From the IMG/VR virus record IMGVR_UViG_3300017528_000567, positions 1 through 64,000 of that record: a stretch of DNA of 64,000 bases; one strand, given 5' to 3'. Numbering within the stretch: position 1 is the first letter of the stretch; each line of letters starts with the position of its first letter. The notes beneath the pieces are model-generated. The model saw only the letters and a list, made by a program, of their open reading frames with translations, made no database searches and had not been told where the DNA came from. Positions 338-15,413 of this stretch are shown piece after piece. Made by a program: the position numbers and the translations under genes.

Positions 338-1039
338 CTACACCGCACCGTGTAGACGCTTCATCTCGTCTTGCTTATCGCCAGATGTTGCCCAGCTCGG
401 GTTGCCAATCCTAGGCCCGTGCTGCCATCTGGCGTCCGTCGTTTTAACGAGCTTGGCTCCGTAGGCCTGACCCGCCCTTTCAATGACTTGCTTCATTTTT
501 GCCGACAAGCTCACCCCAATCTGATACCCGTACTTGCCGTTGGGCAATGCGGCAATCAGGACGTAGTAGGGCTTGGTCTCCGCATCCTGGACGTAGGTCT
601 CATCACTCTTCTGGGTGACGAAATCGCTACCCATCTGCGCGTTGATGATCTTCACGTACCGCAGCCACTCCTCCCCATGCCCATCGCTGCGGCGCAAATC
701 TTGAAGGTACCCGCGCACGTACGGCCCCGCTTCGGAGCCTCTCTCCAGCACAATGGCCTGCATGGCCTTGATGGCGTCTAGAAAGGCCGCGTGATGGGCC
801 ATCTCATGCGCCACTACCCGCTCGAGTGTGGCCAGGTTACCCGTCACAGTCTTCTGAACCTCTATCGTGCTGGTCGGCTGCCCGGGGGTCCACTTGCAGG
901 TGCCCAGGTTCCTCGCACCAATGGCATTCTTCACCTTCACGACTGGCGCGACGTCCAGGCCCAACATCGACATGTACTTCGCTACCAAGCCGTGCAGGTC
1001 GGCAGAGGCGATATGTATGTCGCGGTAGTCGTAGGTCAT
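338..1039 (-). CDS. SprT-like zinc metalloprotease
   Basis: HEMAH (HExxH) motif plus downstream GHGEEW; 'RNLGTC' strand before the active site as in SprT; start set at ATG 1039 (MTYDYR). Confidence 0.75.
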   Translation of the reverse strand: MTYDYRDIHIASADLHGLVAKYMSMLGLDVAPVVKVKNAIGARNLGTCKWTPGQPTSTIEVQKTVTGNLATLERVVAHEMAHHAAFLDAIKAMQAIVLERGSEAGPYVRGYLQDLRRSDGHGEEWLRYVKIINAQMGSDFVTQKSDETYVQDAETKPYYVLIAALPNGKYGYQIGVSLSAKMKQVIERAGQAYGAKLVKTTDARWQHGPRIGNPSWATSGDKQDEMKRLHGAV

Positions 1040-1085
1040 AGGCAAGGCCCTATCCCGGCTTGTTGAGTGGCCTCGGGGAGCTGCC

Positions 1086-1523
1086 TTAGTTCAGCGGGCT
1101 CACGTGAGGGCGGCCCTGCACGGGCTTGAAGTCCTTTTCCAAGACGTCGGCAAGAAGGTCGGCCCCGTTGGCCTTATCGATGAATTTGGCGGCATACTTT
1201 CGCGCCTTTTCAAACGAATCAAACTGCTTCTTGCGCTGGTAGGTGCCGTCAGGGGTGTCGACCTCTACACCGAACTGATCACCGTCCTCGTAGATGCCCC
1301 ACGAGTGTTTGACCCCGCCAGCAAACTGAGCTCGCGCAAGCCAGACGCCGTCTTTGACTTCCTTCCAACCAATCGTCTCGCTAGGTGTGACCTTAGCGAG
1401 CCGAAGACTGAGATCTTCAAGAGCAGACGCAATGCGCCGCCGTGAGGGACGTTCACTCTGCGCGTAAGCAAGGAGGCGGCGCAGTTCGGATTGTAGTTCG
1501 GACGTGTTAGCGATCTTGCGCAT
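1086..1523 (-). CDS. MRKIAN-module protein 1 (tag plus unrelated C-terminal domain)
   Basis: Starts MRKIANTSELQSELRRLLAYAQSERPSR; same module at 8338 and 9294; AAAGG SD-like site upstream. Confidence 0.8.
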   Translation of the reverse strand: MRKIANTSELQSELRRLLAYAQSERPSRRRIASALEDLSLRLAKVTPSETIGWKEVKDGVWLARAQFAGGVKHSWGIYEDGDQFGVEVDTPDGTYQRKKQFDSFEKARKYAAKFIDKANGADLLADVLEKDFKPVQGRPHVSPLN

Positions 1524-1541
1524 GGGGTCGGTGCCTTTCAA

Positions 1542-1567
1542 GAGGCCCGGACTTGTGCGCCGTGCCC
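1542..1567 (-). promoter_or_regulatory. conserved 5'-leader hairpin of an MRKIAN gene
   Basis: GGGCACGGC-GCACAA-GTCCGGGCCTC. Confidence 0.7.
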
Positions 1568-1653
1568 TGTCACAGAGCTCGCCGCACAAGTGGTTTACTG
1601 CCTGCTTGCTCCCGTTAGGAACGTGGCAGAAATCTTTATACATCCGCTGCGAT

Positions 1654-2853
1654 ATGTTTGACCTTTTTGCGGCTCGTTCGACCCTGACCCTTGACGATGC
1701 CAAGCGAGTATTGGGTGTCCCGCCGGGCGGCTACATGTCTCCCGATGATCTCAAGGCGATCTACCGGCAGAAGGCGCAAGCGGCGCACCCTGACAAGGGC
1801 GGGACGATCAAGCAAATCCAAGATGTGAATGAGGCCTACGACATCTTGCGGGGCAAGGCCAAACCCGCGATGGCGCCGTCATATGATTACCGTCCCCCGC
1901 CGCCGCCCCCTCCCACGCCAAAGCGCGCCGGCCCGATCACCCCAGTCCAGCTAGGCGAGATCGTGGCGTACGCCCGGCACTTCGCCATGAATGCCTTGGA
2001 ATGGAGGAAGCTGGGCTTGCATCGGATTGTGCCGTTTGAGACCAACGCATCCGCCTTCTCTCATCTGACCGATGCCGAAGGATACGCAATATTGAGGATT
2101 CTCAGACAGTGGCGAGAGGATGCTCCAAACGAGCCACTGGCGACGCCAGCGCAAGTCGGCGAGATCCTGCGGCTCCTGCGTTCGTACGAGCAGTACATCA
2201 ATGTCAACCCATCCACATGGGACGACCTCGGGCTCTATCGGATCATCCCATATCCGAACCGCGGAGAAATGGATATCAGGCGCTGGACTGAGGACCAAGC
2301 TGAGAAGGTCCTGCGTATTTTGCGCCCCGCCGTCACATGGGCTGAGAAGTCAAAGCAGCATCAACAACCACCGCCGCCGCCGAAGGCGAAACAGCCACCG
2401 GCCACGAAGAAACAGATCGACCAGATCATACGTCTAAAGCTCACACACGACGAGTGGTATGCGTTCGGGTTGAATCGGATCTCACGCTTCCCAGGAGAGC
2501 TTGCGGACTACTACGATTTGACCGAGGACGACGCGAAAGAAATCCTCGCGATTGTGAAGCAGGCGCGTAAGCCAGCGACCAAGAAACGCGCGCCGCGATC
2601 GAGCCCCTCATCCGAACCCACCTCGCGTGCACGTGAACGCATGTATGAGGCCTACGACCGAGCCGACGGAGACCACGAATTCAAGTTCACAAAAATGCTC
2701 GTCGCGTTGCGTAAGCGCATCAAGGCGACCACGGACCCGGCGAAACGCGCCGGTATCGTCGACATGCTTCGAGAAGAGCTCAACAATCATCGCTGGAGCA
2801 TAGCGGACAAGGTCGTGTTCCGGCACATCCTAGACGTAGAGCTGAGGGCCTGA
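1654..2853 (+). CDS. DnaJ (J-domain) protein with three ~60-aa internal repeats
   Basis: AKRVLGV...YRQKAQAAHPDKGG...VNEAYDIL is a J-domain with the HPD motif; repeats begin ITPVQLGEI / ATPAQVGEI / ATKKQIDQI. Confidence 0.85.
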   Translation: MFDLFAARSTLTLDDAKRVLGVPPGGYMSPDDLKAIYRQKAQAAHPDKGGTIKQIQDVNEAYDILRGKAKPAMAPSYDYRPPPPPPPTPKRAGPITPVQLGEIVAYARHFAMNALEWRKLGLHRIVPFETNASAFSHLTDAEGYAILRILRQWREDAPNEPLATPAQVGEILRLLRSYEQYINVNPSTWDDLGLYRIIPYPNRGEMDIRRWTEDQAEKVLRILRPAVTWAEKSKQHQQPPPPPKAKQPPATKKQIDQIIRLKLTHDEWYAFGLNRISRFPGELADYYDLTEDDAKEILAIVKQARKPATKKRAPRSSPSSEPTSRARERMYEAYDRADGDHEFKFTKMLVALRKRIKATTDPAKRAGIVDMLREELNNHRWSIADKVVFRHILDVELRA

Positions 2854-2926
2854 TGGACGCTCAAGGGCACATCGCCGCACGAGTCCTATGGCGATTCTCT
2901 GCGGCTTCGTGAAGACGGCCCGTGTG

Positions 2927-2961
2927 CTTGAAGTTTAGCCCCTGTCGATTGTCTTGAGGGC
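2927..2961 (+). promoter_or_regulatory. class-I promoter-like motif
   Basis: CTTGAAG-N13-GATTGT-N9-ATG. Confidence 0.8.
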
Positions 2962-3429
2962 ATGACCCAACAAATCACAACCAAGTCAGACGTTGCCCCG
3001 GCCCCGCGCACGGCGTATGCCACACCCGCTGAGAACATTGGCAAAGCCATTGACCTCCTGAACTACCTGCCAAACGGAGTGGCGGCGTGGGTCGAGGCAC
3101 ACGACGGCAATCAAGAGTTGGCTGAAGCAAACGGGGAGCAAATCAAGCAGCTCGTGAACCAACTGGGGGCGATTCTGGCCTCTATGCCAAGATCAGCGGT
3201 CTACAACGTGTACGGAGTAGGCGACAAAACCTTGACCTTCTCGAGCTCGGCAGAGTTGATCGCGGCAATGGCCGGCATGGGAATCAAACATGTTGGCTAC
3301 TCATCTAGGACATCACGCCTTCGCCCCGAGCTGAAAGGGCAACCCACATTCACGTCGCTCAACGGCCCCATGTACGACGGCGGAGGCAAGATCAGATATG
3401 AAGGCCGCGGTGTGGGCACCATGTACTAG
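2962..3429 (+). CDS. hypothetical protein (C-terminal GQP...GPM...RYE motif)
   Basis: 155-aa ORF directly after a class-I promoter motif. Confidence 0.75.
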   Translation: MTQQITTKSDVAPAPRTAYATPAENIGKAIDLLNYLPNGVAAWVEAHDGNQELAEANGEQIKQLVNQLGAILASMPRSAVYNVYGVGDKTLTFSSSAELIAAMAGMGIKHVGYSSRTSRLRPELKGQPTFTSLNGPMYDGGGKIRYEGRGVGTMY

Positions 3430-3430
3430 G

Positions 3431-4252
3431 TCACAGTCGCAACGCCTTCAGCGCGGTGAACTTGTCCGGAGCCTTGGCCTTAAGATGGCCGGGCTCCAGT
3501 GCATAGCTCGCGAAGGACTCTGCGAAGTCTTCAATGTTTGGCTTGCTCTCCGCATAGTCAGAGATGAAAGGCGGCTGACCCCACGGCGGCGCGTTGAGGT
3601 CGACGTGGTGCCGCTCCTCAACACCATGCCCCAGCTCGTGAGTGATGTAGGTCGCCAAGACGTCGATACTAGGCACGTGCCCCTCTCGGAGCACTAGGCG
3701 CATTGTGCCTTGACCATCCCAAGAGGCGTCCTCTGAACCGCGGGCCTTGTTCGCCAGCAGTATCTTGCTCACGACGCCCATGGCGCGTTTTGCGGGCGCC
3801 TTGAGCTTTTTGAAGGCTCGGCTCCACAGCGCTATTAGCTCTGGTGCGTCCTTGCGGTGTTCGAGCGAGCCCTCGTAGGTGACGTTCTTCCCGGTGATTT
3901 TCTCGAGCTCGCGGCGGGCGTCGTAGAACGAGGCCTCCGGCTTGCTCTTCGGGGCTCGCGGCATTGCCACGTCTTTCAGCTCGGCGACCTGTGGCGGTTC
4001 GAGGCCCGACCAGCCCTCGAACCATTGGAACAGCTCGCCAACGGTCTTCGGGACGTCATACACGTCATTCGCCGCAATCTGTTTCAACCAGCTTTGCGTA
4101 CGGCGAATCGTCGACGTCCAGCCCCCGCGCCACTCGGACGTTTCGGAGGTGTTCTCCGCCTCCATGAACGCGATGAGCTTTTGCAGATAGGGGGCAGTGA
4201 CGGGCGCCGATTCGACAAACCGCGCCAGCACGGCGTGAGCAACGGAGTACAT
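3431..4252 (-). CDS. zinc-dependent metallopeptidase (HExxH, anthrax-LF/MuF-associated type)
   Basis: THELGH plus downstream SDYA...EDFAESF; N-terminal AVLARFVESA motif; start uncertain. Confidence 0.7.
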   Translation of the reverse strand: MYSVAHAVLARFVESAPVTAPYLQKLIAFMEAENTSETSEWRGGWTSTIRRTQSWLKQIAANDVYDVPKTVGELFQWFEGWSGLEPPQVAELKDVAMPRAPKSKPEASFYDARRELEKITGKNVTYEGSLEHRKDAPELIALWSRAFKKLKAPAKRAMGVVSKILLANKARGSEDASWDGQGTMRLVLREGHVPSIDVLATYITHELGHGVEERHHVDLNAPPWGQPPFISDYAESKPNIEDFAESFASYALEPGHLKAKAPDKFTALKALRL

Positions 4253-4293
4253 GTAGAGGGAGCTTGAAAAGACCTCTACCGACCCCGTTGGCA

Positions 4294-4608
4294 TCATGCT
4301 CCTAGTCGCTCCCTGACCTGCTGCAGAACGCCGGTCTCCTCCCGCATCCACCGATCGAGGCGGCTGGTCTCAAAGCTGTCCACCGGCTCAGCTAAATAGG
4401 TGGTGGCCGGTCTAAACACAAAGGATAGACCTTCGGGAGAGGTGAGCTCCTCGGGCGCTTCGTAGGGGTCGTCACTCCCTACCCCGCGTAACTTCCAACC
4501 AAGCGCGCGTGCAACACTGACCCATGCAGACATGGAGGCAGGAGTTGCCTTGAGCACCTCTTTAAATATACCGACACCCGGAGACTGATTTTTGCGCTTC
4601 TTGGTCAT
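4294..4608 (-). CDS. hypothetical protein
   Basis: 104-aa ORF MTKKRKNQ...; GAGGGA upstream. Confidence 0.6.
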   Translation of the reverse strand: MTKKRKNQSPGVGIFKEVLKATPASMSAWVSVARALGWKLRGVGSDDPYEAPEELTSPEGLSFVFRPATTYLAEPVDSFETSRLDRWMREETGVLQQVRERLGA

Positions 4609-4636
4609 ACCGTGTCCCTCAATGTACGCTGCAATG

Positions 4637-4852
4637 CTAGTCAACGAGAGATTCGCCAACCTCAAGAATGTCGTAGCCGGTGGACTCGATTGCGGCACTC
4701 ATTGCGGCATCTACCGCCGCATCCTCCGAGCTCGCCAGTGCGACGCACCGAAACCTGGAGGGAAGATCCACCGCATGGATGGGACCGGCCTGGTCGCAGG
4801 TGGAGTCGCCCCAAGTGATATTGCGGAGAGTGACGGTATAACGCCGCGGCAT
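4637..4852 (-). CDS. hypothetical protein
   Basis: 71-aa ORF MPRRYTVTLRNITW; ATG sits 9 nt after a class-I promoter motif. Confidence 0.7.
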   Translation of the reverse strand: MPRRYTVTLRNITWGDSTCDQAGPIHAVDLPSRFRCVALASSEDAAVDAAMSAAIESTGYDILEVGESLVD

Positions 4853-4887
4853 GTCCTGAAGACAATCGACACGGGGCAAACTTCAAG
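4853..4887 (-). promoter_or_regulatory. class-I promoter-like motif
   Basis: CTTGAAG-N13-GATTGT-N9-ATG. Confidence 0.8.
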
Positions 4888-5029
4888 GGCACCAGCTGGT
4901 CGTCGAGCTGGCGGAATGGACCCAGCTTACGGGCTCGTCGCAAACCGTTTATGACACATCATGTGAAACGGGTTACGATGTGTGCACGAACGGCACTCCA
5001 ACAATCCTGTGGTAGAAATAGACAGACCC

Positions 5030-5725
5030 ATGACCTACGACTTTCGACGTGAGGCGTCGGACGCCAAGAAGGCACTCAAGGATCTCTACCTGTGGCTCCG
5101 CGGCAAGTACGATCAAGGGTATGGCAACCGTATGAGCCCTCAGCTTGAGGCCGGCCTGCGTGCGTTGGGTGTCGAGCCTGGTGATGAGCTGCCACGGCGT
5201 CCGTCCGGCGCGGTGCCACGTGCTCTGTACGATCTGGTAGTGATGGCTGGAGAGCACCACGTGTATGAGTCCGATCGCGAAGTGCTTCTTGAAGCTGCCA
5301 ACAAGGCGCTCGGCGGCAACGGCCACGAGCTACCGGGGGAAGCAGCGCCAAAGTCCTCATTCACTCGCAACAGCAAGTGTCCGAAATGCGGCAATCCCGG
5401 TCCTCACGAGGACAACGGGAAGAAGGGCCGCGATCAGGTGTTCTACTGCGACGAATGTGGCAAGGCGTTCGGCGGCACCATGATGAACCTGTCAGCTGCC
5501 GGTCGACCGGTCGCGACTTCCGATGGGGAGATCATGTTGGACCTGTACGATTTGACTGGTGACCATGAGCCGGTGTCGCTCGCTCAGTTCATTGCAGACA
5601 ACAGTGCCCCAGATGTGGCACCGCTGGACCTCCAAGACATTGCTGCGTTGCGTCGGCTCCGCGTCGGACAGCACGTTTACCTCGGGATTGGCGGCGGTGG
5701 CGTCAAGATCAAGCGCATCGGGTGA
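5030..5725 (+). CDS. hypothetical protein with zinc ribbon
   Basis: CPKCG...FYCDECGK; starts MTYDFR, similar to the 1039 gene. Confidence 0.7.
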   Translation: MTYDFRREASDAKKALKDLYLWLRGKYDQGYGNRMSPQLEAGLRALGVEPGDELPRRPSGAVPRALYDLVVMAGEHHVYESDREVLLEAANKALGGNGHELPGEAAPKSSFTRNSKCPKCGNPGPHEDNGKKGRDQVFYCDECGKAFGGTMMNLSAAGRPVATSDGEIMLDLYDLTGDHEPVSLAQFIADNSAPDVAPLDLQDIAALRRLRVGQHVYLGIGGGGVKIKRIG

Positions 5726-5866
5726 CCTGATTTCCCAGAAAGCTCGCAGAGGCTGGTCGGGATGGACTGCCTCGTGAATGACGCACTTGGTGTAGCCGTA
5801 GGCATGAGCCTCGCCTACACCAGACCTTGACATTCTTCCTGTCTTGGAAGTATCGAGAGTTATACA

Positions 5867-6079
5867 ATGTACAATTCTCGAGCTAGTACGACCAAGCCGC
5901 TCCTTATCGAGGAAAACGTCCCGCCGAGACGCAAGCCAATCGACTGGGAGGTCTTGACTGCGGATGAGCTCGGCGACCTCGCGCGTCACGGCAAGGATAG
6001 TTCGACCAAGAACACCGCCCTCATGCATCTAGTCAAGCGAGCGAGCATCGTCGATCCGCACGTCCGCAAAACGGCCTAG
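5867..6079 (+). CDS. hypothetical protein
   Basis: 70-aa ORF; TTGACA at 5827 upstream. Confidence 0.45.
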   Translation: MYNSRASTTKPLLIEENVPPRRKPIDWEVLTADELGDLARHGKDSSTKNTALMHLVKRASIVDPHVRKTA

Positions 6080-6104
6080 AGCATGCGCGGAGCTCAGTGC
6101 TTGC

Positions 6105-6139
6105 CTTGAAGTTCGACCGTTGTCGATTGTCTCTCACGG
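6105..6139 (+). promoter_or_regulatory. class-I promoter-like motif
   Basis: CTTGAAG-N13-GATTGT-N9-GTG. Confidence 0.8.
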
Positions 6140-6586
6140 GTGAGCAAGAGCTTGAAGAATCTCAGGGGGCTTCTGCCAGGTGGCTATGTTCGGGGAGAGA
6201 GGCTTAGCCTGGACCGTCTTGGCGACGCCCTGGCCGACGCAATCAACAGGATTGATCGGAGAGCCCGCTGTGTGGCTGAAGACGCCGGCCTGCCGGACCC
6301 CGCGCCGCGCTTCGGGCAAATCCTAGCCGACCTGCATGCGCTCTTGACTGGCGGTACGACCGGGGCGCGCAAGGCGGAAGTAGCAGCCGATCTCCTACAT
6401 GGAGAAGTTACGGGGACCACCCTAACCATCGGCAGCGTCACGCATGACATTGACTGGGTCGTGATGCGTGAAGTGACTGACCCGACAATCATCGTCGAGG
6501 ACGGCACGGTCATCTACCTGCGGAGCTGGGCCGACCACAGGGCCGCGCTGCTCAAGCTCGGCGCTGACCACGTCCCCGGGAGATAG
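6140..6586 (+). CDS. hypothetical protein
   Basis: 148-aa ORF; GTG start 9 nt after a class-I promoter motif. Confidence 0.7.
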   Translation: MSKSLKNLRGLLPGGYVRGERLSLDRLGDALADAINRIDRRARCVAEDAGLPDPAPRFGQILADLHALLTGGTTGARKAEVAADLLHGEVTGTTLTIGSVTHDIDWVVMREVTDPTIIVEDGTVIYLRSWADHRAALLKLGADHVPGR

Positions 6587-6595
6587 TCACCGGCT

Positions 6596-6619
6596 GGTGC
6601 CCGGATAGGCAGGGACTGG
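6596..6619 (+). repeat. half copy of the AATGGA-loop palindrome
   Basis: GGTGC-CCGGATAGGCAGGGACTGG; 3' arm missing. Confidence 0.6.
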
Positions 6620-6679
6620 CGGCTCGTTCGCGAGCGCTGCCTAGCCTAGAATCCTGGAGAAGTCCTACCTGAGAGCAGG

Positions 6680-7072
6680 CTAGGTGCTCAACGTTTTGTA
6701 GATGGTTGACCAGAAATCTGCGACATCGTTGTCGTCGAGGTGGTGCTGGAGCTTGCCTGTGGGCGCAGTGTCCATGATGCGCTCAGACGTTCTACGCGAT
6801 TTGGGAATGCGTGACGCCACCACGGCAATGATCCGCGCCACCACTACAGGTGCACCCGGCACCTGCTCTCCCGCTCCGCGGCAAGCCTTCCGAAACTTCC
6901 GCAACTTCTGCGCGAAGCTCTTCTCATGAAGTTGGGTCTCCAGCGTGAGCCCATTCTTGTGAGCCAGGCGCTGTAGGCAGAACATGCTAAACGCATTTGC
7001 GAGGCTGGACTCTAGTTCGTTTTCCAGCGCGTTCTGTGCTTCTGGCAGTGGCTTCGCAAGTGCAACCCTCAT
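6680..7072 (-). CDS. hypothetical protein, paralogous to the upstream ORF (LDDxDxAxFW motif)
   Basis: In frame with 7076..7510 across one TAG; C-terminus KLQHHLDDNDVADFWS. Confidence 0.6.
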   Translation of the reverse strand: MRVALAKPLPEAQNALENELESSLANAFSMFCLQRLAHKNGLTLETQLHEKSFAQKLRKFRKACRGAGEQVPGAPVVVARIIAVVASRIPKSRRTSERIMDTAPTGKLQHHLDDNDVADFWSTIYKTLST

Positions 7073-7075
7073 GAC

Positions 7076-7510
7076 CTACGGGATAGCACGTTCAGCGGCC
7101 ATGGTCTCATCGACGCGCGTCCAGAAACCTGCGGTGTCTTGGTCGTCCAACGTCACACGTAACTTGTTGATATCCGGGACCTTTTTAATGAACTCGCTGA
7201 CTGCCTTGCGACGAATTCGCTCATCCGCGCTCTTCACATCGGCAATTGTCTCCTGGACGGCCTTACCTCGATCGCTGAATCCTTGGATGGCGTGCTCCAT
7301 CGCGTTAGAGAACGCTGTCAACAGTTTTTTGACCTCGGTGTCCCATGCCGGAACCGAAGCCATGTACCCAGTCTTCCGACCTAGGCAAGCCTTGTAATAC
7401 TCCCGTAGTCCGCCTTTCAGGTGCTTGGCCAGGCCCGCTTTGTAAAGCACCCGATTGTGCGCCATCGCGAATAGGAATCGCCTCGTGATGCGCGTCGCCA
7501 AATCGTCCAT
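7076..7510 (-). CDS. hypothetical protein (N-terminal RITRRFL motif)
   Basis: 144-aa ORF; C-terminus KLRVTLDDQDTAGFWT. Confidence 0.7.
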   Translation of the reverse strand: MDDLATRITRRFLFAMAHNRVLYKAGLAKHLKGGLREYYKACLGRKTGYMASVPAWDTEVKKLLTAFSNAMEHAIQGFSDRGKAVQETIADVKSADERIRRKAVSEFIKKVPDINKLRVTLDDQDTAGFWTRVDETMAAERAIP

Positions 7511-7555
7511 GTATTGCTCGCCGCCAATTCTCGTGTCGGTGCTAGTCTCTCACTG

Positions 7556-7654
7556 TCAGCCTCGCAGCAGGGCACTGGTGCCTTGTGCCGCTGTTCCAAG
7601 TGTTCTGAGCTGCAGCTCGAGCTCCAGTTCACTCGTATTGGCGATCTTGCGCAT
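7556..7654 (-). pseudogene. truncated MRKIAN-module ORF (32 aa)
   Basis: MRKIANTSELELELQL then diverges and stops; keeps the full conserved upstream element. Confidence 0.6.
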
Positions 7655-7675
7655 GGGTCTGGGCGATCCTTTCGA

Positions 7676-7701
7676 GAGGCTCGGACTTGTGCGCCGTGCC
7701 C
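7676..7701 (-). promoter_or_regulatory. conserved 5'-leader hairpin of an MRKIAN gene
   Basis: GGGCACGGC-GCACAA-GTCCGAGCCTC. Confidence 0.7.
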
Positions 7702-7768
7702 TTGTTACAGAGCTCGAACCACAAGTGCTTTACTGCGCAGAAACAACGACGCTAGCGTTGCCCCCAGC

Positions 7769-7775
7769 GGTGTAA
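7769..7775 (+). promoter_or_regulatory. class-II motif GGTGTAA
   Basis: 8 nt before ATG 7784. Confidence 0.7.
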
Positions 7776-7783
7776 CAACCCAC

Positions 7784-8260
7784 ATGGATGACATTCGGCC
7801 GCTCGGGTCCGTAGAAGTTAGATGCGCTTACCCAGGATGCAACTGGAGCTTCTGGGTAGATTGCCTGGACCCAAGGCTGCCCGTCGGGCCGTTTGATTGC
7901 GGGGCCGACCACCAAACGCAAGCGCGAGTCAACGCTGCCCTAGAGAAGCTAGACAATGCCGGCCTGGTCTATCAAACAGCCGCGGGACCTGGCTGTGGTT
8001 GCGGAGGGCCGACCCAAAAATCCGGGTGCGAGCCGCCTCCCGCGCAACCCCCTACGATGACGACCGGGTATCTGATGCTACGGCTGCGCGAACCGGACTT
8101 TGATGGGAGTCAAGAGATGTGGGCCGCGGGTCGATTTGCGTGGGCGACTTGGGCCTCTCTCGGCGATCTTGAGGCGCTTCCGTGCGACGCCGGGGCCTAT
8201 CATTGGATGCCCCTTGATGAGGCGAGTCGTAACCGCCCAGCGGGTTACACAGGCCCTTGA
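7784..8260 (+). CDS. Cys-rich hypothetical protein
   Basis: ATG 8 nt after GGTGTAA; CAYPGC, DC, CGCGG motifs. Confidence 0.7.
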   Translation: MDDIRPLGSVEVRCAYPGCNWSFWVDCLDPRLPVGPFDCGADHQTQARVNAALEKLDNAGLVYQTAAGPGCGCGGPTQKSGCEPPPAQPPTMTTGYLMLRLREPDFDGSQEMWAAGRFAWATWASLGDLEALPCDAGAYHWMPLDEASRNRPAGYTGP

Positions 8261-8293
8261 GCCAAGAAAGCTCTTATCTGCTGCGCTCTGTGA

Positions 8294-8316
8294 AGGCACG
8301 GCTGAGGTCCGGCCTC
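8294..8316 (+). promoter_or_regulatory. conserved 5'-leader hairpin of an MRKIAN gene
   Basis: AGGCACGGC-TGAG-GTCCGGCCTC. Confidence 0.7.
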
Positions 8317-8337
8317 AACCCAAGGGAGCCTTGACCG

Positions 8338-8883
8338 ATGCGTAAGATCGCCAACACCCACGAGCTACAGGACGAGCTGCGGAAGCTCATCGCTTACACA
8401 GGGAGCAATAGGCCCTCTAGAGAACGCATTGCTCTAGAACTGAAGACCCTTTCAACTCGGCTCGCTTCTAGTGGAGGCCCGCTCCTGGACGCCAAGGTCG
8501 AGTGGGCGGTGGAGCTCGGTGAGCTCATGAAAGCACGATTCAGCGGCGTCGGCGGCTGGCGAGACCACCACATCAACATCGACATGCACCGCACAAACTC
8601 TGGATGCACTGTCAATCTAGAGAGCCCCCTTGGATGGACTAGCAACATCTATATCGAGATGGGCGAAGGCGAGCAGGCAGTCCATGTCTATTTCAATGTG
8701 TCAGAGCCCAAGGATACGCCCACGGGTGCAGACGGATTGCCCGACCTCGACGCCATTGACCTGACCGACCTGATCGGGAAACAGAAACGCGAAAGCTTCC
8801 CTATCAAGGACCGCGAGCCTATGGCCAAGGCGATGATGGCCGTGTCACTGTGGATCTCGAAGCAGATTCAAAGCGGCCGTTGA
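8338..8883 (+). CDS. MRKIAN-module protein 2
   Basis: MRKIANTHELQDELRKLIAYTGSNRPSRERIALELKTLSTRLA. Confidence 0.85.
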   Translation: MRKIANTHELQDELRKLIAYTGSNRPSRERIALELKTLSTRLASSGGPLLDAKVEWAVELGELMKARFSGVGGWRDHHINIDMHRTNSGCTVNLESPLGWTSNIYIEMGEGEQAVHVYFNVSEPKDTPTGADGLPDLDAIDLTDLIGKQKRESFPIKDREPMAKAMMAVSLWISKQIQSGR

Positions 8884-8905
8884 CGTCGCTCTGCAGCGCG
8901 ACGCT

Positions 8906-8940
8906 AACCGGATAGGCAGGGAATGGACCCTGCTTATCCG
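8906..8940 (+). repeat. AATGGA-loop palindrome, copy 2
   Basis: AACCGGATAGGCAGGG-AATGGA-CCCTGCTTATCCG. Confidence 0.9.
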
Positions 8941-8946
8941 TCTGTA

Positions 8947-9294
8947 TCAGTTGCCTGTGTCTGCTGTGATCAACCAGATCAATTTTCCGAAGACATCGTC
9001 CAGTTCGGTGACAACAGTTGCGAATTTCCGCACGGCAATTTTTGTGTCAGCGCTGAGTCCGCGACTCCCCATCAGTCCGCGGGCGACCTTCTTCACTTGT
9101 TCTATTGGCCCTTCAATACTGGCGACCAAGCGTCCCTCGTCAGTCAGCTCAGCCGTATGCTCGCCGGCAACGCGGGCACGGAGAGACTCGAGCTCGCTGG
9201 CGAGCCGAGAACGGGATGGTTTATCGGTCTGAGCATAGGCAAGCAGGCGGCGCAGCTCGATCTCAAGTTCATCGGCATCGGCAATCTTACGCAT
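8947..9294 (-). CDS. MRKIAN-module protein 3
   Basis: MRKIADADELEIELRRLLAYAQTDKPSRSRLASELESLRARVA. Confidence 0.8.
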   Translation of the reverse strand: MRKIADADELEIELRRLLAYAQTDKPSRSRLASELESLRARVAGEHTAELTDEGRLVASIEGPIEQVKKVARGLMGSRGLSADTKIAVRKFATVVTELDDVFGKLIWLITADTGN

Positions 9295-9317
9295 TGGTCT
9301 GGCACCTTTCTAGAGTG

Positions 9318-9342
9318 GAGGCCGGACCTCAACGCCGTGCCT
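9318..9342 (-). promoter_or_regulatory. conserved 5'-leader hairpin of an MRKIAN gene
   Basis: AGGCACGGC-GTTGAG-GTCCGGCCTC. Confidence 0.7.
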
Positions 9343-9394
9343 TCAAAAGGCGCGCTCGATAAGTGGTTGCTCGACGGCCTGCCTATCCAAGATG

Positions 9395-11386: not shown

Positions 11387-11448
11387 TAACCGGATAGGCA
11401 TGGAATGGACCTTGCCTATCCGGTTAGCACCCCCTGAAAGTCTGGAAA
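11387..11448 (+). repeat. AATGGA-loop palindrome, copy 3, plus left inverted-repeat arm
   Basis: TAACCGGATAGGCATGG-AATGGA-CCTTGCCTATCCGGTTA-GCACCCCCTGAAAGTCTGGAAA. Confidence 0.9.
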
Positions 11449-15355: not shown

Positions 15356-15413
15356 ATACTTTCAGGGGGTGCAAACCGGATAGGCATGGAATGGACCATG
15401 CCTATCACGCCGG
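15351..15413 (+). repeat. right inverted-repeat arm plus AATGGA-loop palindrome, copy 4
   Basis: TTTCCATACTTTCAGGGGGTGC-A-AACCGGATAGGCATGG-AATGGA-CCATGCCTATC. Confidence 0.9.

Follow-up and report, generated by a model that had tools for sequence, protein, structure and literature searches.

A module of about 45 residues that begins with MRKIAN or a close variant, hereafter called the tag, is a portable, folded unit that huge soil phages of one clade have joined time and again to the N-termini of small proteins with no relation to one another. It was recognized in a 64,000-nucleotide (nt) stretch of DNA, hereafter the window, which corresponds to positions 1 to 64,000 of the IMG/VR record IMGVR_UViG_3300017528_000567 and thus to the first 64 kb of a single contig of 255,478 bp. 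The parts of the proteins that follow the tag are called their cargo. We propose, with a probability of roughly 0.4, that the tag is a docking or targeting domain whose preferred destination is the assembling phage head. Where labels are needed, G000 designates the phage of this record, G002 a relative of 407 kb and G003 a relative of 529 kb.

A portable module on unrelated proteins

An earlier note on this DNA had placed the module at the start of three complete genes (beginning at 1523 and 9294 on the minus strand and at 8338 on the plus strand) and of a truncated one (7654, minus strand). We compared a profile of the three intact window copies with all 5,911 six-frame open reading frames (ORFs) of the 255,478-bp genome, and all four were confirmed, with E values between 1e-28 and 2e-30 for the profile's own three copies and of 2e-5 for the remnant. 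The same search retrieved an intact fifth copy beyond the window, at genome position 209076 on the minus strand, at the start of a 244-residue protein (MQKIAN..., E 2e-21). The next match was at chance level (E 0.04); chance is excluded for the tag copies. Four intact copies and one remnant are thus present in this record, which IMG/VR rates as ~54% complete. The count of copies in relatives that the earlier note had proposed gave 13 to 14 tags in G002, concentrated in two islands, and a single one in G003. In G002, a 307-residue protein (157402–158322, plus strand; L049:17402–18322) starts with a degenerate tag and ends, at the extreme C-terminus, with another degenerate copy.

Tagged gene 1 (1086–1523, minus strand) codes for 145 residues from an ATG at 1523 to a stop codon at 1086–1088, with the tag occupying codons 1–45 (nt 1389–1523). 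The program-made ORF of this gene extends upstream to a TTG at 1703. Nevertheless, we regard ATG 1523 as the true start because among the five paralogues, an in-frame stop is found just upstream of the ATG in three and a ribosome-binding site of the AAGG/GGAG type in all five. Its cargo of ~100 residues belongs to a small family together with proteins P0013, P0033, P0087 and P0117. Tagged gene 2 (8338–8883, plus strand; 181 residues) has its tag at nt 8338–8472, followed by a cargo of 135 residues that matches no known family. Tagged gene 3 (8947–9294, minus strand; 115 residues) has its tag at nt 9160–9294, and its cargo is predicted to form two long helices. Pairwise BLASTP comparisons of the parts that follow residue 46 gave no similarity (all E > 1) and no alignment, which bears out the claim that unrelated sequences stand behind the module.

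The decayed copy (7556–7654, minus strand) starts with an ATG at 7654, matches approximately the first 15 residues of the tag (MRKIANTSELELELQ) and reaches a stop after 32 codons. It forms a short upstream ORF ahead of an untagged gene of 144 residues (7076–7510, minus strand), a homologue of which is present in G002. Altogether, the segment 7076–7654 resembles a tag cassette that lost its tag and whose promoter was then put to new use.

We then searched 1.84 billion cluster representatives from public metagenomes with a profile of four tags. The search yielded 556 protein clusters at E <= 1e-3, including 182 at E <= 1e-10. The statistics that follow on tag position and cargo refer to 150 listed representatives of the 556 clusters. 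The tag stands at the very start (residue 1) of 143 of them, and the other seven look like over-extended gene calls, as is the case for the window's own 1523 gene. The proteins are 45 to 280 residues long, with a median cargo size of ~89 residues. The 144 C-terminal parts of at least 30 residues fall into 105 BLAST groups. The isoelectric points of the cargo are broadly spread and not diagnostic. Almost no Pfam or PHROG families were recognized in the cargo of the 150 representatives, with sporadic exceptions, and no toxin domain recurs among them: there are single sporadic Pfam matches, one of them PIN-like.

Tagged proteins can be compared with untagged homologues. Two tagged proteins of G002 have untagged homologues in the genome of G000, and in both cases the homology starts at exactly residue 46. 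Similarly, protein P0286 consists of the tag followed by MPRFTMPR..., and its untagged homologue P0292 starts with MPRSFYLP... The cargo of the 209076 copy, which matches phrog_37844 (E 7e-29), is the only cargo of a tagged protein of this genome with a family match, and it has 590 homologous clusters. The best 120 of these 590 comprise 111 untagged and nine tagged proteins. In a maximum-likelihood tree of this cargo domain that includes all 120 sequences, the distribution of the tagged members requires six label changes, at least four of which are forced by well-supported branches, although one or two apparent tag losses may be truncated gene calls. The tag has been gained or lost at least four times within this one cargo family. 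The idea of a modular tag on unrelated cargo therefore holds over 556 clusters and ~105 cargo groups among 144 C-terminal parts, with tagged and untagged homologues and repeated gain and loss. The earlier note had also considered that the module might simply be a domain of one conserved family with homologous C-termini; cargo diversity and the pairs of tagged and untagged homologues remove that possibility.

The sequence logo of the tag reads M-x-K-I-A-[NSD]-[TP]-x-E-L-Q-x-E-L-R-R-L-L-A-Y-A-x-S-x-x-P-S-R-x-[RK]-[LI]-A-x-E-L-x-x-L-[SA]-x-R-[VL]-A, with an invariant P and R in the P-S-R turn. Conservation ends abruptly at position 44–45, the information content collapsing at 45. The module was thus correctly recognized in the earlier note, and its length, given there as ~43 residues, is corrected to 44–45 residues with a sharp end after R-[VL]-A. 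The residue that follows is G, A or S in approximately two-thirds of the sequences, and G in approximately one-third. An AlphaFold2 model of the 115-residue protein, calculated with 150 sequences, has a coil at residues 1–6, a helix at 7–21, a loop at 22–27 and a second helix at 28–47. The predicted local distance difference test (pLDDT) score is ~98 within the tag and dips just behind it. The model of the 244-residue protein has the same hairpin, followed by a separate, beta-rich cargo domain with pLDDT values above 93. These models show the tag as a two-helix hairpin followed by a flexible linker. Natural strain variants have a 9-nt (three-codon) insertion immediately behind the tag of gene 3, as expected of a linker.

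The tag has no model in Pfam or PHROGs, whether the four tagged proteins, the isolated tags or the 150 representatives were used as queries. The best candidates, Pfam DUF1843 (E 0.12, for one of the four tags) and PDB entry 8t0b, a DUF1842 protein (E 0.16), are below any threshold and belong to families whose functions are not known. A PDB profile search with the tag returned chance-level matches only. Foldseek comparison of the tagged 115-residue model with the PDB gave nothing below E 0.7, and the best look-alikes, which are not significant, are the dimerising helical hairpins of histidine kinases. For the 244-residue model, there was no match in the PDB, and its relatives in the AlphaFold DB are all unnamed. 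The ESM Atlas returned only unnamed clusters below an informative score. A word-based homologue search limited to the tag found only two proteins and was uninformative. We found no description of the module in the literature that we searched.

The genes of the record include those for a large terminase, a ribonucleotide reductase, an NAD-dependent ligase, a RecD-like helicase, a clamp loader, a portal and a head maturation protease. Nearly all genes lie on the same strand, and many are very large. The record is part of a huge phage, since it is ~54% complete and contigs as long as 434 kb encode proteins identical to its own. The nearest relatives of the phage come from metagenomes; the terminase of LR745208.1 (485 kb) is 45% identical. 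The terminase of Tunturi_5, a cultured jumbo phage of the acidobacterium Tunturiibacter, is 27% identical to that of the record (PMC11924767). Sequences near-identical to this phage are present in soil and rhizosphere metagenomes of several studies, and two more IMG/VR records are near-identical fragments of it. A look for metatranscriptomes gave no RNA run. No relative was found among GTDB genome contigs. The tag was not found in LR745208.1 or in Tunturi_5. The three genomic contexts of tag clusters that we inspected are all phage-like and of the same clade as this phage, with genes coding for RecD-like helicase, ribonucleotide reductase, clamp loader, chaperonin, Hsp20 and a scaffold-like protein. 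In these contexts, the tagged gene is often a lone insert on the opposite strand.

Conserved DNA upstream of the tag genes

The earlier note had placed the start of the conserved block at the ATG. The coding module stands, but the start does not, since ~80 nt of non-coding DNA upstream are conserved as well; all five copies have this stretch, and nhmmer detected it at no other place in the genome. In front of gene 1, this upstream element (1524–1606, minus strand) consists of a core, AGTAAACCACTTGT, ~76 nt before the ATG, followed by a GGCACGGCG...GTCCGG block and then the ribosome-binding site. That of the remnant (7655–7741, minus strand) is 82% identical to it. The upstream element of gene 2 (8257–8337, plus strand) has the core motif AAGAAAGCTCTTAT at 8264, which is the top match of this genome to the tag-promoter matrix described below, and that of gene 3 is a conserved non-coding segment at 9295–9379 (minus strand).

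Both parts of the repeat are maintained by selection. The third codon positions of the tags are 27–45% identical, i.e. near saturation, and their amino acids 52–73% identical, which indicates that the peptide is under selection as a protein. The 80-nt upstream stretches are 53–82% identical despite the saturation of synonymous sites, and thus the upstream DNA itself is under selection. The repeated unit in this phage is therefore the promoter/5' untranslated region (UTR) together with the tag. As a structured RNA, the 5' UTR has weak consensus folding, little covariation and no Rfam family. No sigma-70-type promoter was found at the tag genes, and a candidate bipartite motif, CTTGTG...TGTAG, failed genome-wide.

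A 14-nt core motif (e.g. AGTAAAGCACTTGT or GAGAATCCGTTGAT) precedes every tag gene of the three phages, at 74–80 nt from the ATG in this genome and mostly at 22–47 nt in G002 and G003. The GGCACGGCG...GTCCGG block is particular to G000 and absent in the other two. We searched the genomes with a core-motif matrix trained on tag genes alone. The top match in the whole genome of G003 (17.7 bits) lies 47 nt ahead of the scaffold gene, and the tag gene itself comes second. In G002, the top match stands before the gene that comes next downstream of the capsid gene. Motif-preceded genes of G002 represent 15 of 125 genes in the structural blocks, none of 44 in the replication block and seven of 254 elsewhere (Fisher p = 0.012 and 0.0006). 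Among them are the scaffold gene and one with a homologue in Tunturi_5 that carries the annotation 'minor tail protein'. These motif matches provide moderate evidence that the tag genes share a promoter class with virion genes, and this class may be a late one.

Possible destinations of the tagged proteins

The strong conservation over the whole surface of the hairpin, in hundreds of proteins, suggests a single conserved binding partner, to which every tagged protein would be brought. The likeliest destination would be the assembling head, through binding either to the scaffold core or to the inner surface of the capsid. A changing repertoire of small effectors, synthesized alongside the structural proteins, would then enter the head, perhaps with later removal of the tag by the head protease of the phage, and reach the next host together with the DNA. 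We favour the head because of the sharing of promoter motifs, the size of the cargo, which is within the range of the T4 internal proteins, the multi-copy and fast-changing repertoire, the presence of a scaffold and a protease, and the precedents of phages T4 and P1.

The head genes of this phage are arranged in the order portal (151543–153318), a 1,114-residue protein, head maturation protease (145818–147383), scaffold-like protein (144447–145769), a 208-residue protein and HK97-type major capsid protein (142814–143695, minus strand), in genome coordinates. The protease matches phrog_18299, the scaffold-like protein is highly acidic and of low complexity, and the Tunturi_5 homologue of the capsid protein is annotated as 'major head protein'. 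With its portal, maturation protease, acidic scaffold and HK97-type capsid protein, this gene set has the machinery for a T4-like route. The 293-residue capsid protein is 88–92% identical in G002 and G003 and 85% identical in LR745208.1, with terminases at 45–55%. It has >2,000 homologous clusters at E <= 1e-10, the best 120 of which are 85–99% identical and found on contigs of up to 620 kb. The capsid protein is thus unusually frozen within an abundant soil clade.

A shared N-terminal address on diverse phage proteins is already known from T4 and P1, and the present module is unlike these in its size, its sequence and fold, and its scale. The internal proteins of T4 serve in defence and are diverse, with only a capsid targeting sequence in common, and the tag is similarly an N-terminal address on otherwise unrelated, small (~8–20 kDa), fast-evolving accessory proteins (PMC3012670, PMC9026906). 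As in T4, the tag loci vary among related phages, and genes for a scaffold core and a head protease are present. In contrast, the T4 sequence has 10 residues and is cut after Glu by gp21, whereas the tag is a 45-residue folded two-helix domain without a recognisable cleavage motif. Also unlike T4, a conserved promoter/5' UTR accompanies the tag in this phage, and the scale is two orders of magnitude larger, with hundreds of cargo families. In the Dar anti-restriction system of P1, an N-terminal segment sends DarB or a heterologous reporter into the capsid for the next host, and the first 30 residues of DarB are sufficient for this (PMC9024508). That signal measures between 9 and 30 residues, is known only from a single very large protein, and is not a module shared by a family.

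Related arrangements exist outside virions. Polymorphic toxins and the Nif11/NHLP-type leaders of ribosomally synthesized and post-translationally modified peptides (RiPPs) have a conserved N-terminal trafficking domain or leader on polymorphic C-termini. They share with the tag one N-terminal module on many unrelated C-termini, several paralogues per genome and module shuffling. However, the tag carriers are phages, not bacterial secretion loci; no toxin/immunity pairs or known toxin domains were found among the 150 representatives, in contrast with polymorphic toxins, and unlike RiPP leaders, the tag is followed by folded domains (median 89 residues) and lacks a GG cleavage motif. The helix-turn-helix coat-binding domain of the P22 scaffolding protein and the cargo-loading peptides of encapsulins are short helical elements that dock proteins inside an HK97-fold shell. 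The tag resembles them as a charged helix-loop-helix of similar size, a likeness that may serve as a lead only, but those docking elements are C-terminal. We found no sequence similarity between the tag and the scaffold of this phage.

Several observations weigh against the head as a destination. The module is a 45-residue folded domain, as opposed to the short peptides of T4 (10 residues) and P1 (<30 residues), and no recognisable protease cleavage site was found in the tagged proteins. The tag genes are located in accessory islands, outside the head module. In this genome, the region upstream of the scaffold gene scores 7.7 bits and motif enrichment is not significant, so that the promoter-sharing argument is weak here. 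LR745208.1 has a capsid protein that is 85% identical and yet no tag, and the tag is therefore dispensable for this type of capsid. Some clusters are barely more than the tag (45–77 residues), and a pure address label would hardly account for such tag-only proteins, except as remnants of the kind seen at 7654. A tblastn search of the GenBank phage collection gave no match to the tag and hence no cultured carrier there. In its widest form, the proposal would make the tag a universal packaging domain, a folded cargo adaptor with which huge soil phages of a widespread clade load several hundred families of small effectors into the capsid for injection; we put this forward tentatively and regard it as somewhat doubtful.

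The alternative that survives best is a generic docking or oligomerisation module that acts independently of the virion. The hairpin would bind a conserved hub and thereby concentrate or co-assemble small proteins in the infected cell. The hub might be a chaperone of phage or host (e.g. a J-protein/Hsp70 system) or a compartment built by the phage; alternatively, tagged proteins might bind one another in four-helix bundles. A two-helix hairpin with a single hydrophobic stripe per helix usually needs a partner surface, and almost all surface residues of the tag are conserved. J-domain proteins are encoded beside tag genes in this phage (1504–2853), in G002 and on the contig of P0003, and Hsp20 and a chaperonin are also encoded by these phages. 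The occurrence of tag-only proteins fits this explanation, as does the nature of the top structural look-alikes, the non-significant matches to dimerising hairpins. However, the J-domain similarity is generic, and the tag-free LR745208.1 has a J-domain protein as well. Approximately 50 genes share the presence/absence profile of the tag, and phylogenetic profiling therefore cannot pick out the partner. By itself, such a module also leaves the sharing of the motif with head and tail genes in G002 and G003 unexplained. We regard this explanation as the main rival, less likely than the head but to be taken seriously.

It is less probable that the tag itself is the active part, for instance an inhibitor or binder of one conserved host target, with the C-termini serving to modulate, localise or regulate it. 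The very strong conservation of the hairpin on all faces, including the first five residues, would fit this idea, and so would the proteins of 45–77 residues that are essentially the tag alone. Nevertheless, the cargo domains are independent, well-folded families that are mostly tag-free, and a single genome would have little use for 13 to 14 copies of one warhead.

A leader-like pro-sequence, holding the cargo inactive or marking it for processing or export by a dedicated peptidase, appears improbable too. It would account for a conserved leader with a variable remainder and many paralogues, and for the G, A or S that follows R-[VL]-A in approximately two-thirds of the sequences. In addition, a gene for a Zn-metallopeptidase-like protein (3431–4351) is near tag genes in this phage and in G002, and it is present in all three tag-positive and neither of the two tag-negative phages. 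However, this profile is common to ~50 other genes, and the peptidase gene of G003 is not adjacent to its tag gene. Moreover, the cargo consists of folded domains of 50–230 residues rather than short cores, a double-glycine motif is missing, and we saw no transporter.

The layout of the tag, with a short extended N-terminus, a helix, the P-S-R turn and a second helix within ~45 residues, resembles ribbon-helix-helix proteins of the Arc/CopG type, which might autoregulate their genes through the conserved upstream DNA. We consider this very unlikely. No such Pfam family was detected even at E <= 10, and none was found in the PDB profile search or with Foldseek. The putative strand has a single hydrophobic position (I4) and no apparent alternating core pattern, and residues 1–6 are coil in the monomer model. 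Furthermore, the upstream DNA differs between G000 and G002/G003, save for the promoter-like core that also precedes untagged genes. As the upstream block is phage-specific and the tag is conserved across phages, the tag probably does not serve to bind the DNA of its own promoter.

Finally, a DNA-level cassette, i.e. a promoter and translation-initiation unit copied around and dragging a few codons along, would agree with the 80 conserved upstream nt that travel with the tag, with the remnant at 7654 that lost the tag and kept the promoter, and with a second motif of this genome (MTYDFR, see below) that is conserved at the nucleotide level alone, but it is hardly credible, being already contradicted by saturated third positions (27–45%) alongside amino-acid identities of 52–73% and by a protein profile that retrieves hundreds of clusters, as befits a peptide under selection.

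Neighbouring genes and wider meaning

The J-domain protein (1504–2853, plus strand) is encoded divergently from tagged gene 1, and its gene overlaps the upstream element of the latter. It has three internal repeats of ~60 residues, and these bear a weak resemblance to GemA of phage Mu. The Zn-metallopeptidase-like protein (3431–4351, minus strand) has an HExxH motif (HELGH) and a weak match to Peptidase_Mx. Its gene adjoins tag genes in this phage and in G002, where it is preceded by a promoter motif of the tag type. Tagged gene 1 is followed directly downstream, at the record's left end, by the gene for a SprT-like metalloprotease (338–1045, minus strand) that has a HEMAHH motif and a match to Pfam PF10263 above the cut-off.

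A DNA hairpin with a 13-bp stem (CGGATAGGCAGGG-AATGGA-CCCTGCTTATCCG) is located at 8906–8940, between the convergent genes 2 and 3. It belongs to a family (AACCGGATAGGCAKGG-AATGGA-CCWTGCCTATCCGG) with copies at 8906–8940, 11391–11425 and 15377–15410, at the 3' ends of accessory genes, which probably represents a family of bidirectional terminators. In two soil runs (X2 and X3), we found contigs with an extra segment of 555 nt between two copies of the hairpin at 8906–8940. This segment thus represents a cassette that is present in some strains and absent in others.

The genome has a second, much shorter shared N-terminus, MTYD[FY]R, at window positions 5030 (plus strand) and 1039 (minus strand) and at genome positions 142376, 222098 and 224220 (all minus strand). 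The proteins concerned are otherwise unrelated: a Lar-like zinc-ribbon protein, a SprT-like protease, a 257-residue neighbour of the capsid gene, a J-domain protein and a 361-residue protein. Conservation is limited to 18 nt, ATGACCTACGACTTTCG, synonymous sites included. These genes have no upstream conservation and no obvious ribosome-binding site, and a pattern search did not find the motif in G002 or G003.

Huge phages are abundant in soil, and most of their genes are unannotated. One label on >500 protein clusters would group much unannotated sequence into a single functional class, and a shared label would point to a conserved receptor. Should the tag be a packaging domain, the list of tagged proteins would amount to a catalogue of injected host-takeover and anti-defence proteins, and the tag might serve as a tool to load foreign proteins into very large capsids. 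With the capsid as the destination, the injection of protective proteins known from T4 and P1 would be hugely scaled up in the roomy heads of these phages, and the injected arsenal would be identified. If the destination is another hub, the 45-residue domain would still be a ready-made, portable interaction tag.

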